Assembly: GCA_023334545.1 (NCBI GenBank)
Contig: JAADVB010000024.1
Location: forward strand, 59,626-123,625
Source: Salisapilia sapeloensis CBS 127946
Lineage: Eukaryota > Protista > Oomycota
Direction of reading: 5' to 3'
Length of the DNA stretch: 64,000 nucleotides
Below are positions 3,001 to 12,204 of the stretch, piece after piece; the stretch's first letter is position 1; every line of letters starts with the position of its first letter. Under the pieces are notes generated by a model, which was not told the DNA's origin, searched no databases, and worked only from the letters and a program-made list of their open reading frames with translations. Both the position numbers and the translations under genes were made by a program.

Positions 3001-6000
3001 TCTGTCTGTAGTTGCATCCAGTGTCGAGCCCTCAACGCTGGACTTTTCAAATCCTGAATCAAGGGCAATGTCTGTCGAAACTGTTCGATCTTCGTCTTCA
3101 TGTTTCCCCACACAGCCCATTCTTTCATATCCTTTCCGAACTTGACCACTTTCTTGAAGAATTGAGCAGCAGTCGTCTCCATGGCATCTACCTCCAGTTC
3201 ATGGAAAACTTTGAACTTCCATCCTTGCCACACAACGTCCCATTCGTCCTGTAACGTCCATATCTGCCGAAGTTGCTCCACCTCTCGTTCCGTCTGGACA
3301 AAGCCTTCATTCTCCGTCTCTTCGATGCTAAAGATTTCCAATCCCTTTCGCAACTGAGCCTGATGTTCACGAGTAACCTCCATCTTCTTCTCAAAGTCAG
3401 ACAGGATGGTATGAGCTGTGCTAGACGATTGCTCGCCAGAGTACGGCAACGTCGCCTGTGCCTCTAAGCGAAGCTCGGACATCTTCTTACTAAGCTCAGC
3501 TACGGACTCCTGCAGGCTTTGCTTCATACTGAGCTTACACTTTTGCAACATCGTGTTCGCTTCTGTTAGCACACCTTCAAAGACTTCCCAATTCGGTCGT
3601 AAAGCTGCCAAATCATTCTGTTCTTCTTCTGTGATCGGAACATCAAACTCTGCTAGTAGATCATACTTTTGCTGCAAAGGTTCAAAGCGAGCAAGGATGG
3701 TAGGTGTGCTGTCTCTAATATCTTGCAATAGACGTATGCTATCGCCTAAGTGATCCAAGTTGAGTGGTCGAACTTGCAGCTTCTCCGCGTTCATAGTCAT
3801 CATCGATGTGAGCTCATGCAGTTCATCGTGTGCTGTTTGATTCAGTAGACCTGTAAGCTTACCAATCCACTGGACTGTATGTTCTACGAGACTCGATTTG
3901 AGGAAATTGGTGTCGATCTGGATGAAGTTGATCGTATTCGTCGAGTCTTCGTTCTGGATATTCGTCTGCTGCTCTCGATAGCGTTCAATATCTCCTCTAA
4001 ACTGCTGTAAAGGTCGATTCGCCTTGGCATATCGACGAATGAACGCTTGTTTATCTTGATTCCATAATAGCTTGTACTTGTCCCAGTACCCAAGGTACTT
4101 CTGTAGCTCTGTCGCACTGGACGACATGCCATTCATAATGTGCACAAGCACCTTGAGGATCTCTTCGTCATTAAAAATGGAATTATAAAAGCTATTCTGA
4201 TTCGCTTGCTGGTTGTCCGACGGTTTACTCTCCATTTTCTCACTTTTACTTTCAGCTTCTACCATCTTTTCTTCAGTTTTAGCTTCAGGCACCCCGTCGT
4301 CACGCTCTCCCTTCTCACCTTCCTCTAGATTGTCAGCTTTCTCCTGATTCGACGTAGTAGCTGCATCCATTGGATTAGTACCAGCTCGCTTATGCTTAAA
4401 CGAAGTGACGAGTCGAGGGATAACAGAGATGACTTGGAAGATTTCCTTTGCGACCGAGTTCACCATCTGCGTCAAGTCGACCATGAGAGGTTTAAAGTCG
4501 ACTTTACTCTCCTCCAACACGACGTGTACTCGGAAGAGAGGTCTAGGATCTGTCTTTGCATCTCCATTAATCGCTTTCGATAGCTCCTGGAGAGACCTTT
4601 TGACTGATTGACGTAACGAATCTTCTAGCATCTTATCAAACTTTTCTACAAAACGCTTCCATTCGCGCTGGACTTCAGATGGACCAGAAGAAAAGTTCTC
4701 ATACGTCGCTTGCATTGTTGAGTGAATCTTTGAATAGGCGTCCCGTAGCTTCTTGTCTACGTCTCGACGATGCACCTCTTGCTTCGCTTCAAAGACACCT
4801 TCGTCATACACTGTATTACGCTCAATGTAGATAAGCATGAGCTTGGAAATCATCTTGCAGCACTTGATAATCGTCTGCTTATTTGCTTGGAACTCTTGAA
4901 CGACCTTGTACGTGGTTTCACAGTGCTTCCGACAGTCTGCGACATACCACTCGACAACACCTTTCGAAGCCCACGTCAACTTCTGTAGACCAGGCTGAAT
5001 ACGTCGATCGAGCTTCCGAATGATATCTTCAAACAACCTGCGTTCATTCGAACTAAGTTCTAGGACGATGCGATTGTAGTCACGAACGACAAGCGTCACG
5101 TGTTCACGAAGCACACGCAATGCTTCCTGTTGATTGCAAATATCATGTGCAAGATATGGGATCTGGAACTCTCCATTAAACTGCTGCCAATGATGCACTT
5201 CGGAAAAAAGACTCATGAGTGGTCGATCAAAGTTACAATGTAAGAAACCTTTCTTCGCTCGTCCGATGATTGTCTTCTCTGTATTCTGCAAAACGTTTTG
5301 ATCTTTCCCACCATTATGAGCATTTAAATTGATCGCACCAGTCGGCTTTGCACCACTACTTTCTTGATTATTACTGGCGATCGATCCAGTGACAATGTCC
5401 GAAGATGCTACCGTCTTGGTCATCAGTGGGTTCTCGAGTCTGGAGCTTAGATTCGAACAACCGAGATCATTTAAATCTTCAATCCAGTCATGGTACTTGC
5501 GCTGGATGAACTCGTTCACGACAAGACGTACACTGTCATAGTACTCTTGACACTCCTCTTGCTCAGCAACGTTCGATGCGTCACAAATGTCTTTTAAACG
5601 TATCATCTCTTCTGCGACGTTAAACAAAAGTCCTCGTGCCCATAATGCTGCCCCAGAGAACTGAGGCTCCATGCTCGATAGTGGAGGTGCACTCTTGTTC
5701 TTTTCAAACTGTGTACGCATCGTCGCCACGAACGTCTTGAACATGCCAAAGACGTCAATCGCACGCTTTTCAACACAACGTTTAATAGCTTTACGATGTG
5801 CTATCTGTCTAAACGCAAGTACAAGATCGACTCCAAACGATACAGTAGATGCAGTCTCGAACGCACCGTTGATCACGTTCTGCGTCATGGCTTCGAGGTC
5901 TTTCATGCCGTTCTTAAACACGCTAAAGTCGCCATGCCAACTAGTGATCTTGACGTCCAGGAGATCGTACTCGAGCTTTCGAAGTCGATCCACATGACCT

Positions 6001-8153: not shown

Positions 8154-10229
8154 ATGACGAGCTCCAAAGTCCATAAAAAGCGTGAAGATGAACGTCATAT
8201 TGACGACTTGCGTGCATTCCAGCGCTCCAATCCGGCTAATAAACGATGCTTCAACTGCAATGAAATGGTATGCAACTAGACACTTTCAATAAGTCGATAT
8301 ACATGGTATATTAATTGTATTAACTGTAGATGCCACAATACATTTGCCTCGACTTTAATACATTCGTCTGTACATCCTGCAGCGGCATTCAGTACGTCCA
8401 TGTCCTCCATACCTATCCAAGACATATTTAACCCGTCTATCATAGTCGAGAATTTGCCCATCGTGTAAAGTCGATTTCCATGGCCAAATTCACCGATTCA
8501 GAAGTCAAGAACATGACGCAATTCGGTGGCAATGAGGTATACTGTCACTTCCTTCTTTCGATTCTAATTGAGCTTACAAGTACATTTCGATGGTGTTGTG
8601 TGCATGCAGGCAGCGAAGAAGTATTGGTTAGCAGAGTACGATTCGAGTTATCGACTACGTGGAGCTACTCCAGGCGAACGGACACGTAGCTTTATCCGCA
8701 ATACCTTCATAAACCGAAAGTCAGTCATCCTTCCTACCCTTCCCTACTTTTATTATAAGCTAACTGCTTTGTACCACTTGCAGGTGGGTATACGAGTCGC
8801 CTCGTGCATCTAAAAGTAAGTCTAGCGACGCACCGCCAGCGTCTAAACCACAGAAGCGAGAGGAGCAGAATCCCTTTGACGCCTTCAGCGATACGGAACC
8901 GAGTCCTCGGAAACCAAAGAAAGACAGCGGTAACTTTGCTTCCTTCGCCGATTTTTCCCATTTCGATGACACCTCCAAGTCATCGGATACGAATGCTACG
9001 GACGATTTCGCCGACTTTGCCGACTTTGGCTCGTCCAGTGTCAAGCAACGTGCAGCAGCGAAAGAAACGAGTGACGACGCATTCCATTTCCCATCACCGA
9101 AAGCACCCGAGTCCTCTTCGAATGACTTTATGGACTTTGCTCAACCGGCTGCATCAAATCCATTCGATGCCTTTGGCTCTTCTCCAGTCTCGAAGCAGTC
9201 CCAGAAGGATGACTTTGCCTCCTTTGATATGTTTGACCAAGCGCCATCCAATTCTTTTGATGCCTTCGCTCCGTCTCCTGCTAACAGCCAACAAGCGGAT
9301 CCGTTCTCCCAGCCACCACAACAGTCGGATCCGTTTGACCCGAGTGCGTCTTTCGGGTCGACTACGTCCGCACCAAAAGCCGAGACGGCTCCGAAAGCAG
9401 ACCCGTTCTCTGCATTTGATGACCTAGACAAGCCCGTGGATGCATTTACATCGCCTCCAGCGCCAGTAGAACAGACTTCTGGTAACACAGACCCGTTCAC
9501 TGGGATGTCTATGCCTGCGCCAGCCCTTCAGCAACCACAGCAAATGCAACAAGCAATGCAGCAACAGAATAGTGGACAGTCAGCACCAATGTATCCGCAA
9601 CAGAACATGTATGGGAACATGCAGTACGCACCACAGATGCAAATGTATTCTCCAATGCAAATGCAAATGCAAATGCCGACGCAGCAGCAATTTCAGATGA
9701 TGCCACCACAGATGCAACAGCAGTACATGATGCAGTTCCAAGCACAGCAGCAATACCAACAAGCCAATGCTGCACCCCAACAACCCCAACAACCGCCACA
9801 AGCTCCATCTCAACCAAAGGTATGTCCAATCCTATCGAATGGATAGACTACATGATCTCAACGTTGTGGTAGGAAACACAGGAAACGTCTCTACGTGACC
9901 CATTTGCGTCGCTAAGTATTGGGGACAGCTTTGGGTTGCCCAATTCAGGAAAGAATCAGCAGTCCAATGGTAACAACAATGCTGGACTTGGAGCTTCCAT
10001 GACATCGTAAGCTTACACGTTATCCATATACTCTCCCGTAAAGCTCATAACGACTCATTTATCTCGTAGGAATGGCAGTAGTAACCCGCCCAAGAATCAC
10101 ACGTATGACTCTTCATCTCCATCATTTCTACTCTTCTAATCACTATGCTCTAGGTCTGACAGCTTCATGTCAACTACTTCGAACAACAACAGTGCCACGA
10201 TGTCGACCAACCCATTCGACATGTTCTAA
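8154..10229 (+). CDS. ArfGAP-domain protein with NPF/DPF-rich tail (AGFG/HRB-like), multi-exon
   Basis: Spliced reading gives RCFNCNEMMPQYICLDFNTFVCTSCSGIHREFAHRVKSISMAKF, the ArfGAP CxxC-x16-CxxC zinc finger. First intron 8268-8329 is GT-AG. Large exon has many DPF, NPF and DDFxxF motifs and a Q/M/P-rich stretch; the protein ends NPFDMF*. Confidence 0.85.
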
Positions 10230-10317
10230 TGTAGAGCAAGTAATAGAAGTGCCTAAATAAAAGACACCACGTTCTAGCCATCTTGTCTACTTGTACGATA
10301 TACTTGCATGTGTGCAG

Positions 10318-10572
10318 GAACGAAAAAGCCCATTGGTGGCTTTATATCACAAAGTCGAGATTCCCCACCATAGCAGCATGCACGCATGAGGAGTGGCAGG
10401 GAAATGCCAACAGGACATAAAGCCGCCCGGACCGAAGAAAGCCTGTAGCGGCAATCAACCCAGTGACGGCATTCAAGAATACGACGACTGCATTTCTCTT
10501 CTTTACAGCTACCTATAAAAAGTCCCCGCGTAGTCGCGTCCTTGAATGTGATCGGATTCACCTTTCCCGTTC
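10318..10572 (-). ncRNA. Candidate structured RNA element downstream of the RPL9 stop (3' UTR element or independent ncRNA; family unrecognised)
   Basis: Hand-found nested helices: closing stem 10562-10572/10318-10328, long hairpin 10470-10548, hairpin 10422-10452, long hairpin 10338-10424. Non-Watson-Crick positions are G-U on the minus strand and A-C on the plus strand. Confidence 0.5.
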
Positions 10573-10585
10573 AAAGCATGAAGAC

Positions 10586-11152
10586 TTACTCTTCTTCTTC
10601 CTCCATGTGGCCCTTCTCGCTGACGTAGATACCATCAAGGAACTTACGGATATCCTTGTCGTGGACAAGGCACGACTGCGAGATGTTAGCAGCGTCCTGG
10701 GACACCTTGGTGACGTCAATGCCGCTCAGCTCAATCTGGTCCTTGACGTCGTTCGAACGAACGTACTCGACACCAGGCGAGAGTGCAACGCGACGCACAC
10801 GCTTCTCACCGAGGAAGTTACGGATCTCCACCACGTTGTTCTCATAGTTGACGTTGATGGGAAAGTGAGCGTACACGAAGCGCATCTTGTAGCGGAAGCC
10901 GACACGGACACCCGTGATCATGTTCTCAATAAGAGAGCACACGGTACGGACGCAGGCAAGCTGCTTACGGTTGCCAAACCAAAGGTCAACGCGGATCTTC
11001 TCCTTGTTGATGCGGCGGAGGTCGAGCGTAAGGTGACGGAAGTCACGCGTGAGCGTACCGCGCTTGCCCGTCACGGTGACCTTACGGCCATCGAGCTTGA
11101 CCTTGACGTCTTCCGGGACGTCGATGTATCTCGTGGCTAACAATTGACGCAT
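10586..11152 (-). CDS. RPL9: 60S ribosomal protein L9 (uL6), intronless
   Basis: 188-aa ORF with [16 protein letters not shown] and [16 protein letters not shown]. Confidence 0.98.
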
Positions 11153-11303
11153 CTTACTGTCTTCAAAGGGAAAGAGGAAATGAGCTGCTCGAGTATGAGC
11201 GAACCTCTGTCTACCAACCGATATTTTTATCCAATTATATGATATTGGCTGCTATATAATTGGCGGAAATAATTTGACAAGCTATTCGAACACAACGTGG
11301 AAA

Positions 11304-12204
11304 ATGGCTCCAGAACGGACGATGGACGAGACTGTCGGTACTTGAGCACGTTTGATCATGCTTTCATGGCTTGTAAAGACTTAATATGTATTGCTTATTT
11401 CGGGATGGTAGACAAGACCAAAGAGATTACCAAGAGGATGCTGACAGGAGCTGCTCTAGTCGGTATGTGTGATCTTGTTGTGTGTTATAGGAGAGGAGAT
11501 GCTTATGTTTGATGATGTAGGTGGTGCTGGCGCTAGTTGGGGGGCTGTACTTGCTGCACTGCGTAATGAAAGCATCCCGTTCTACGCAGCTTCCATGGGC
11601 ACCAACTTTTTCCTCTTCAGCTCGACTTACATCGGTATGAAGATGCCCACACTAGCACCTCTAGCAGATCCTTAACCTTTACGCAATGTTGAAACATAGC
11701 TCTGGAGGAAATCATTATTGACAAAGTAGGCAAATCCACTCCAGCAACTGGTGCTGCTGCTGGTGCCATGACTGGTGGCTTCTACGCCGGAATATTCGGT
11801 ACGTAGATATGCCTCGTCTTCGCCACTGTTTTGATGTAAACGTACAAATAGGTGGACGTGTAAGGGGTCTTCAGGGAGCTCTAGCAGGCGCTGCGATTGG
11901 AGCCGCGGCACAGTTTGGACGTACGAAGTTCAACCACTGGCGACTATCGAAAGGTCTCGAGCGATATGAAGAAAAGTACGGCAAAGCACCAGCTCAGCTC
12001 TACTATCCGGACTCTGGAAAAGCAGTGGAAAGCAAGCCTACTCCACAGCCCATCGACATCCCTTCGATCTTGCCCAATTCGAGCAAAATCTCAGAGGAAG
12101 AAATTGAGCGACGCATCCAAGTACGTTTGGAAGAGATGCGAAAGGATGCTGCTGAAGGCAAAGATCCTTTCCGAGAAAACATACAGGAGGCAATGAAGAA
12201 ATAA
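11304..12204 (+). CDS. Tim17/Tim22/Tim23-family membrane protein with charged C-terminal extension, 5 exons
   Basis: Joining GT-AG exons gives MAPERTMDETVDKTKEITKRMLTGAALVGGAGASWGAVL...TGAAAGAMTGGFYAGIFGGRVRGLQGALAGAAIGAAAQF, i.e. Gly/Ala-zipper TM helices typical of the family. Confidence 0.65.

Follow-up and report, generated by a model that had tools for sequence, protein, structure and literature searches.

A conserved RNA element attached to RPL9 across the oomycetes, and its possible part in RPL9 3'-end formation

What kind of RNA lies between the stop codons of two convergent genes in the oomycete Salisapilia sapeloensis CBS 127946, directly behind the gene for ribosomal protein uL6 (RPL9)? 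The question is raised by a 64,000-nucleotide stretch of genomic DNA (contig JAADVB010000024.1; hereafter the window), in which a preliminary description, made from the letters alone, had placed a strand-specific multi-helix structure at positions 10318 to 10572 on the RPL9-sense (minus) strand, and had read it as a candidate autoregulatory element, a termination element, or an unknown non-coding RNA (ncRNA). The two genes that border it are the following:

10586-11152, minus strand: RPL9/uL6 coding sequence, 188 aa, intronless, stop codon UAA at 10588-10586 (from the list of open reading frames)
10154-10229, plus strand: last coding exon of an ArfGAP-tail gene, stop codon TAA at 10227-10229, convergent to RPL9 (from RNA contigs)

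The homologues of the RPL9 protein (Pfam Ribosomal_L6) are all oomycete-like and share 74-86% identity with it. The top database matches, from Logan and JGI assemblies, are 86% identical, and those that carry a name come from Lagenidium (83%), Albugo (82%), and Aphanomyces, Achlya and Pythium (80-81%); the database lookup returned no record with an exact copy. The convergent gene (8850-10229, plus strand) is spliced and NPF/DPF-rich, with ...NPFDMF* as the end of its translated product; three runs yielded RNA contigs that delimit GT..AG introns at 9818-9870, 10007-10069 and 10103-10153 (53, 63 and 51 nt). Because the ArfGAP gene ends at the TAA at 10227-10229, its stop codon and that of RPL9 lie just 356 nt apart, and the element takes up most of this interval. 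The 3' UTR of the ArfGAP gene must share DNA with the RPL9 element, on the complementary strand, and the two transcription units must converge and overlap. On the other side of RPL9 lies a divergent gene (11411-12000, plus strand), spliced as well (introns 11462-11519, 11634-11698 and 11798-11850), with a contig depth about 50-fold below that of RPL9; an upstream region of about 250 nt is common to both.

The element region is present in RNA: contigs from the same three runs, all from the same organism, extend from the RPL9 coding sequence through the element into the ArfGAP gene, these being assembled, unstranded sequences that fuse the two genes and carry neither local depth nor poly(A) information. 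A further run, X6, comes from a relative that is about 96% identical. Its RPL9 contig (97.8% identical over the coding sequence) leaves the window at position 10538, 48 nt past the stop, and then continues for 814 nt of unlike sequence.

Folded in isolation, the minus strand of 10318-10572 reaches -94.7 kcal/mol (z -3.88), a value equalled by none of 200 dinucleotide shuffles; the plus strand reaches -71.9 kcal/mol (z -2.28), with five of 200 shuffles as good. The RPL9-sense strand is thus folded better than chance and better than its complement, as had been proposed. Also the individual helices of the preliminary description were all found on the minus strand when their coordinates were checked, and most of them belong to the minimum free energy (MFE) fold; the GCCGC/GCGGC pairing is missing from that fold and competes with the long helix described below. 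The first helix starts 13-14 nt past the RPL9 stop, in agreement with the 14 nt given earlier. Two of the helices are found in the window only:

10562-10572 with 10318-10328, minus strand: closing helix, GAACGGGAAAG (10572-10562) paired with CUUUUUCGUUC (10328-10318), 11 bp in the MFE fold, window-specific
10470-10548, minus strand: 5' extended hairpin, CAUUCAAGGA (10548-10539) paired with UUCUUGAAUG (10479-10470), GUAG tetraloop at its apex, in the MFE fold, window-specific

Alignment of the regions downstream of RPL9 gives a different view of what matters in this structure. Twelve loci were compared: the window and the DNA around 11 other oomycete-type RPL9 genes, namely those of P. kernoviae, Phytophthora-like metagenome contigs, Pythium oligandrum, Lagenidium giganteum, Albugo candida, Aphanomyces stellatus, Achlya hypogyna, three Logan assemblies, and an ENA metagenome contig (RPL9 74% identical). 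Among the closest relatives, BLAST and MAFFT disclosed a block of about 55 nt, some 100 nt past the stop, with a conservation similar to that of RPL9 coding DNA, and by pattern searches the element was found in 12 of 12 oomycete loci, always in the RPL9 sense, with the start of its core 64-132 nt after the stop. The coding DNA of RPL9 is 81-84% identical between the window and the seven closest loci (L001-L007); despite this divergence one block of 15 nt and another of 16 nt are invariant or nearly so. Together these ca. 31 near-invariant nucleotides and the helices that covary beside them span the Saprolegniales, Albuginales and Peronosporales. The gene that follows downstream varies by taxon (ArfGAP, a beta-lactamase-domain protein, a Tim17-like protein, TFIIIC-delta, and others); it is thus RPL9 to which the element is linked. 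This orientation-specific linkage to the RPL9 stop, maintained while the neighbours change, speaks for an element that works in cis on the RPL9 transcript, or that is at any rate transcribed together with RPL9.

Folding statistics and a covariance model fill in this picture. On the sense strand z ranged from -1.2 to -5.8 over the 12 loci, ten of them being at or below -2.4; on the antisense strand eight of the 12 fell between -1.04 and +2.23, the other values being -1.9 (L007), -2.9 (L003), -4.1 (L011) and -5.7 (L092). The covariance model of the core (R1) recognizes exactly one site per oomycete locus, at 59-80 bits, and makes a single match in the 64-kb window. It made none beside about 40 non-oomycete RPL9 genes, which serve as negative controls and were recovered by a metagenome scan with the RPL9 protein that yielded non-oomycete loci only; a metagenome scan with the core pattern gave 0 matches. 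Nor is the element known to Rfam: with Rfam 15 it had no match at E<=10 in a scan of 9800-11300, no family reached its gathering score anywhere in the window, and 10 relatives scanned at E<=5 gave nothing relevant. Evidently, the element is real: an RNA element attached to RPL9 throughout the class of oomycetes, and previously uncatalogued.

The conserved unit is smaller than the ca. 255-nt domain drawn in the preliminary description. It extends approximately from 10495 to 10335 and is centred on two near-invariant single-stranded blocks that had not been singled out there. From 5' to 3' on the RPL9-sense strand its parts in the window, together with the tail that follows, are:

10492-10495, minus strand: AAAU, the window copy of an AAUA-like motif, candidate poly(A) signal, 26 nt upstream of core A
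10455-10469, minus strand: core A, near-invariant block CCGUCACUGGGUUGA
10439-10454, minus strand: P-var hairpin with UU spacers, GCC (10452-10450) paired with GGC (10443-10441), loop GCUACA
10423-10438, minus strand: core B, near-invariant block, UCUUCGGUCCGGGCGG here and UCUUCUGUCCGGGCGG in all relatives
10414-10427, minus strand: 5' strand of the long helix (P-long), GG(C)GGCUUUAUGUC, pairing with 10348-10335 (inverted repeat, in the MFE fold)
10349-10413, minus strand: variable insert enclosed by P-long, here a long hairpin, AUUUCCCUGCCA/UGGUGGGGAAU and CAUG/CAUG
10335-10348, minus strand: 3' strand of P-long, GAUAUAAAGCC(A)CC, pairing with 10427-10414
10312-10334, minus strand: pyrimidine-rich tail AAUGGGCUUUUUCGUUCCUGCAC, directly after P-long

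Core A is identical in eight of the 12 loci (7 of 11 distinct sequences), with one or two changes in the remainder, while core B is identical in 11 of 11 relatives and changed once in the window; across the loci it follows the pattern UCUUC(U/G)GUCCGGGCGG. Between the two blocks every locus has a hairpin at the position of P-var. Its stem differs in sequence and length (for example GCAGC/GCUGC, GCAA/UUGC and GAGUGC/GCGCUC) and its pairing is kept; in the Saprolegniales it is a longer stem in two parts, which covaries between Aphanomyces and Achlya. P-long is formed by the last GG of core B and about 10 further nucleotides, which pair with a CC-ending strand 39-185 nt downstream, and is extended by GGG(C)GG/CC(N)CC. 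When the strands of 11 loci are anchored free of gaps, canonical pairs fill 150 of 187 cells; sliding the partner by 1-3 nt lowers this number to 79-102. Compensatory double changes occur at a minimum of nine positions (all of positions 2-10). RNAalifold, run on an independent MAFFT alignment, also predicts the base of P-long, with pairs changed on both sides. Four substitutions are listed for run X6 within 10296-10446: two hit P-long (10345 and 10335) and turn Watson-Crick pairs into G-U pairs, on the RPL9 strand only, and the remaining two fall at unpaired positions. The insert enclosed by P-long measures 39-185 nt across loci, shows no conservation of sequence, and mostly forms hairpins in the MFE fold of each locus. 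Directly 3' of P-long the relatives carry C/U-rich tracts of 20-45 nt with repeated YGUCC. In five loci (L001, L003, L010, L011 and L091) YGUCC(U) occurs in up to three copies, and UGUCC is found within core B as well; the sequence may be a reiterated protein-binding motif.

Of the architecture as first drawn, therefore, the GGCUUUAUGUC/GAUAUAAAGCC helix is conserved, and the relatives show no equivalent of the closing helix, of the 5' hairpin or of the GCCGC/GCGGC pairing. The relatives keep neither the sequence nor the shape of the 5' extended hairpin (10470-10548), and across taxa the 5' region paired with neither the tail nor core A nor core B more than chance would give (median p 0.4-0.8). 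Alignment downstream of RPL9 did bring out covariation: the same element occurs in all 12 loci and two of its helices covary. A coding reading of the region, as a 95-aa open reading frame at 10274-10561, was rejected, the conserved blocks being devoid of codon periodicity and split by indels of arbitrary length. Three loci (L001, L002 and L007) share an extra motif, G(U/G)GGUAAG(C/A)GGG(G)AU, 25-45 nt upstream of core A, which was not seen in the other oomycetes (the window has UGUAAAGAAGAG at the aligned position); this suggests a lineage-specific extension of the element.

What could such an element do? The reading that we prefer, with a probability of roughly 0.45 and hence somewhat short of even odds, is that it acts in cis on the formation of the RPL9 3' end, probably in response to uL6 itself, in analogy to RPL9B of yeast; in this analogy the ligand, the cleavage site and the switching are all putative. 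Eleven of the 12 loci have an AAUA, AUAA or AAAU 23-30 nt ahead of core A, Albugo having it at -20 and at -32/-34, and in eight of the 12 it is the sole such motif in the 5' region of about 100 nt. In P. infestans the predominant motifs ahead of poly(A) sites are AAUAAA and AAAAUA; at the site, which is mainly an A, no 4-mer is commoner than CUCA (PMC4360255). A position-fixed A-rich motif, followed by UCA about 25-30 nt later, fits these poly(A) sites. The A-rich (AAUA-like) signal and, ca. 25 nt further on, the invariant CCGUCA would make a plausible cleavage and polyadenylation site, with the cut at the very start of the invariant core and the remaining structure just downstream. The depth of run X6 may be mentioned here: its contig over 10296-10446 has a depth of 2.7 against 334 for the contig of the RPL9 coding sequence, two contigs that possibly derive from different organisms, and this low depth over the 3' half of the element is weak evidence that most RPL9 mRNA ends upstream.

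The RNA around and downstream of the candidate cleavage site could offer a platform of the size of a protein, made of the two near-invariant strands (CCGUCACUGGGUUGA and UCUUCUGUCCGGGCGG), the small hairpin and the long helix, whose base GGGCGG would be able to pair either with the upstream CCGUC or with the downstream CC(N)CC. When uL6 exceeds the demand of ribosome assembly, it would bind this platform on the nascent RNA and alter how much of the transcript is productively polyadenylated and how much is read through or degraded, such that less RPL9 mRNA is made. Cleavage at the start of the core, with the structure downstream, is an arrangement that would let a bound protein compete with the processing machinery.

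The precedent for this proposal is the 3' stem-loop of RPL9B in S. cerevisiae, reportedly the subject of a 2012 paper by Gudipati et al. in EMBO J (31:2427). Yeast L9, in the summary given by a later review, binds this stem-loop and so decides between polyadenylation and degradative termination (PMC8047918). In another study the structure was found again in Saccharomycetaceae only and was not in Rfam in 2021 (PMC8216456). Both the yeast and the oomycete element belong to the RPL9/uL6 family, both lie on the sense strand 3' of the stop, and both are conserved structures at the place where the 3' end is decided, or, in the oomycetes, would be decided. As in an element of the RPL9B type, the position on the sense strand 3' of the stop holds in all 12 loci, and a stem covaries. 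The yeast gene, however, is a minor paralogue served by the fungal NNS pathway, whereas the oomycete element accompanies what is apparently the only RPL9 copy fetched per genome. Going by the descriptions, the oomycete element is also the larger of the two, with two invariant strands, two helices and an insert. Linkage to RPL9, conservation, covariation and the absence of an Rfam match are what one expects of a cis element specific to RPL9, and the analogy to RPL9B is therefore reasonable. It had been put forward in the preliminary description, of which the strand-specific, RPL9-linked RNA structure survives, being present in 12 of 12 oomycete loci, and the drawn architecture survives only in part.

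Other ribosomal protein genes provide wider parallels. The kink-turn of RPL30, the elements of RPS14B and RPL22, and the 3' hairpin of RPS28B that acts with Edc3 are likewise gene-specific structured RNAs in the protein's own transcript, and the RPS28B hairpin too is located in the 3' UTR (PMC8047918). These systems are fungal or animal, and splicing or decapping is what most of them control; in several the RNA imitates the protein's site on rRNA, a mimicry that is not demonstrable here. The bacterial leaders of ribosomal protein genes (Rfam L10, L20 and S15) also are conserved, covarying RNAs beside a ribosomal protein gene, in which near-invariant unpaired nucleotides presumably bind the protein; unlike the eukaryotic oomycete element, which is 3' and belongs to no Rfam family, they lie 5' and act on translation or attenuation.

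In the large subunit (LSU) rRNA, helices H95 and H97 adjoin uL6. A mimic of this site within the element was looked for with the eukaryotic LSU consensus of Rfam (3005-3131, less 27 positions) in place of an oomycete 28S sequence; the H94-H97 consensus was recovered through a chimeric IMG/VR contig. Smith-Waterman alignment of the element with the H95-H97 consensus was not significant (p 0.1-1.0 against shuffles), the best matches being CUGGGU(CG). By eye, a collinear look-alike of H94-H97 can be seen in CUGGGUYG..AU, and a second, GGAUU.UG...AAUCC, which falls among positions missing from the consensus, was judged against yeast 25S rRNA. As the local alignment was no better than shuffles, mimicry of the uL6 site is set aside as evidence and kept as a lead. 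The contig in question (L093, IMG/VR UViG_3300009564_000091) opens with some 128 nt of eukaryotic LSU rRNA (1-128) through the sarcin-ricin loop, followed by unrelated AT-rich coding sequence, and likely is an assembly chimera or carries a captured rRNA fragment.

A more specific form of the preferred reading, control of RPL9 3'-end formation in cis, is that of a two-state riboregulator shared by all oomycetes, in which GGGCGG pairs either with the upstream CCGUC or with the downstream CC(N)CC, and free uL6 chooses between the two and so sets the polyadenylation of RPL9. We consider this possible, if doubtful. RNAalifold folds the invariant core as CCGU/GCGG, CUGGG/UCCGG and GA/UC, a fold that needs the same G residues as the base of P-long and hence competes with it; the bases of the alternative CCGUC/GGCGG pairing are invariant, so that covariation neither supports nor refutes it. 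In the Saprolegniales the downstream partner strand is CCGUC(C/U), identical to the start of core A, and this copy makes a two-state arrangement plausible.

Two explanations, both of which we think unlikely, would place the function elsewhere. According to the first, the element is a stable ncRNA of a new or highly divergent class that is co-transcribed with RPL9, processed from its 3' flank, and acts in trans, for instance in ribosome biogenesis, its 5' end being made by cleavage of the mRNA at CCGUCA and its 3' end lying after P-long or the pyrimidine tail. The level of conservation (31 near-invariant nucleotides with covarying helices) is typical of ncRNAs, many snoRNAs owe their expression to a strongly expressed host gene close by on the same strand, and the conserved part starts at the putative cleavage site. 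A large insert unconstrained in sequence and length speaks against such an RNA, however, as does the lack of an Rfam match in the window and the 10 relatives, and the features of the known classes were not found either. Across the 12 loci there is no C box (RUGAUGA), and the D box (CUGA) is absent or not conserved in position, which removes the box C/D snoRNAs; a conserved Sm site, as in the Sm-class snRNAs, is likewise missing (one isolated match, in L092), as are a CCCUAAA-type telomerase template and the conserved U-run terminator of small RNAs made by Pol III. The strand GGAUUUUGUG has an Sm-like or terminator-like look in some taxa, but it is a strand of a covarying helix. A tRNA-like element or a tRNA-derived SINE was rejected as well: ARAGORN found none in the eight loci scanned (L001-L011), and the likeness of GGGUUGAU to a B box is imperfect. 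Elsewhere in the region, at 10053-10130 on the minus strand, there is a weak match to the snR75-like C/D snoRNAs (13.5 bits, E 7.7, far below the gathering score) that overlaps ArfGAP introns on the opposite strand and is probably due to chance.

According to the second, the element is part of the 3' UTR of the mature RPL9 mRNA, where it would be bound by some factor other than uL6 and control stability, translation or localisation. The same conservation and the same linkage to RPL9 are in keeping with this, as are the RNA contigs that join the coding sequence to the element and the X6 contig of RPL9 that runs 814 nt beyond the stop region. It leaves unexplained, though, why an A-rich motif and a UCA should be fixed in position just upstream of the core, and single-copy, gene-specific elements in the mRNAs of ribosomal proteins, where studied, are mostly autoregulatory (PMC8047918).

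A dedicated strong terminator or insulator, one that keeps the very heavy transcription of RPL9 out of the nearby convergent neighbour by means of RNA structure and of pyrimidine-rich signals for pausing or termination, would suit a gene whose next neighbour is convergent in nearly all loci, at a distance of 355-670 nt, and whose structured RNA is followed by a pyrimidine-rich tail with repeated YGUCC; yet the motif was not found at the other genes of the window, and a terminator of general use would have no need for 31 invariant nucleotides throughout the class, which leaves this explanation with little probability. A chance fold, or a miniature transposable element (MITE) lodged between the two genes, which the terminal 11-bp inverted repeat of the window might bring to mind, is refuted by conservation and copy number, the element being single in 64 kb and syntenic in 12 taxa, with its interior conserved and its terminal repeat confined to the window.

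To our knowledge, the autoregulation of ribosomal proteins in eukaryotes has been described almost exclusively in yeast and a few animals. Should the two-state model be true, the oomycete element would be the first autoregulatory RNA of a ribosomal protein outside fungi, animals and bacteria, and the control of the RPL9 3' end would either have arisen twice or be ancient. With a deeply conserved RNA 3' of RPL9 in so distant a lineage, the generality of ribosomal protein feedback through 3'-end processing becomes testable, and the catalogues of RNA would gain a new motif. As the element is compact, with invariant single strands beside covarying helices, tests by binding and mutation are straightforward; the oomycetes, including well-studied plant and fish pathogens for which genetic tools exist, would gain a defined cis element for studies of mRNA 3'-end formation.
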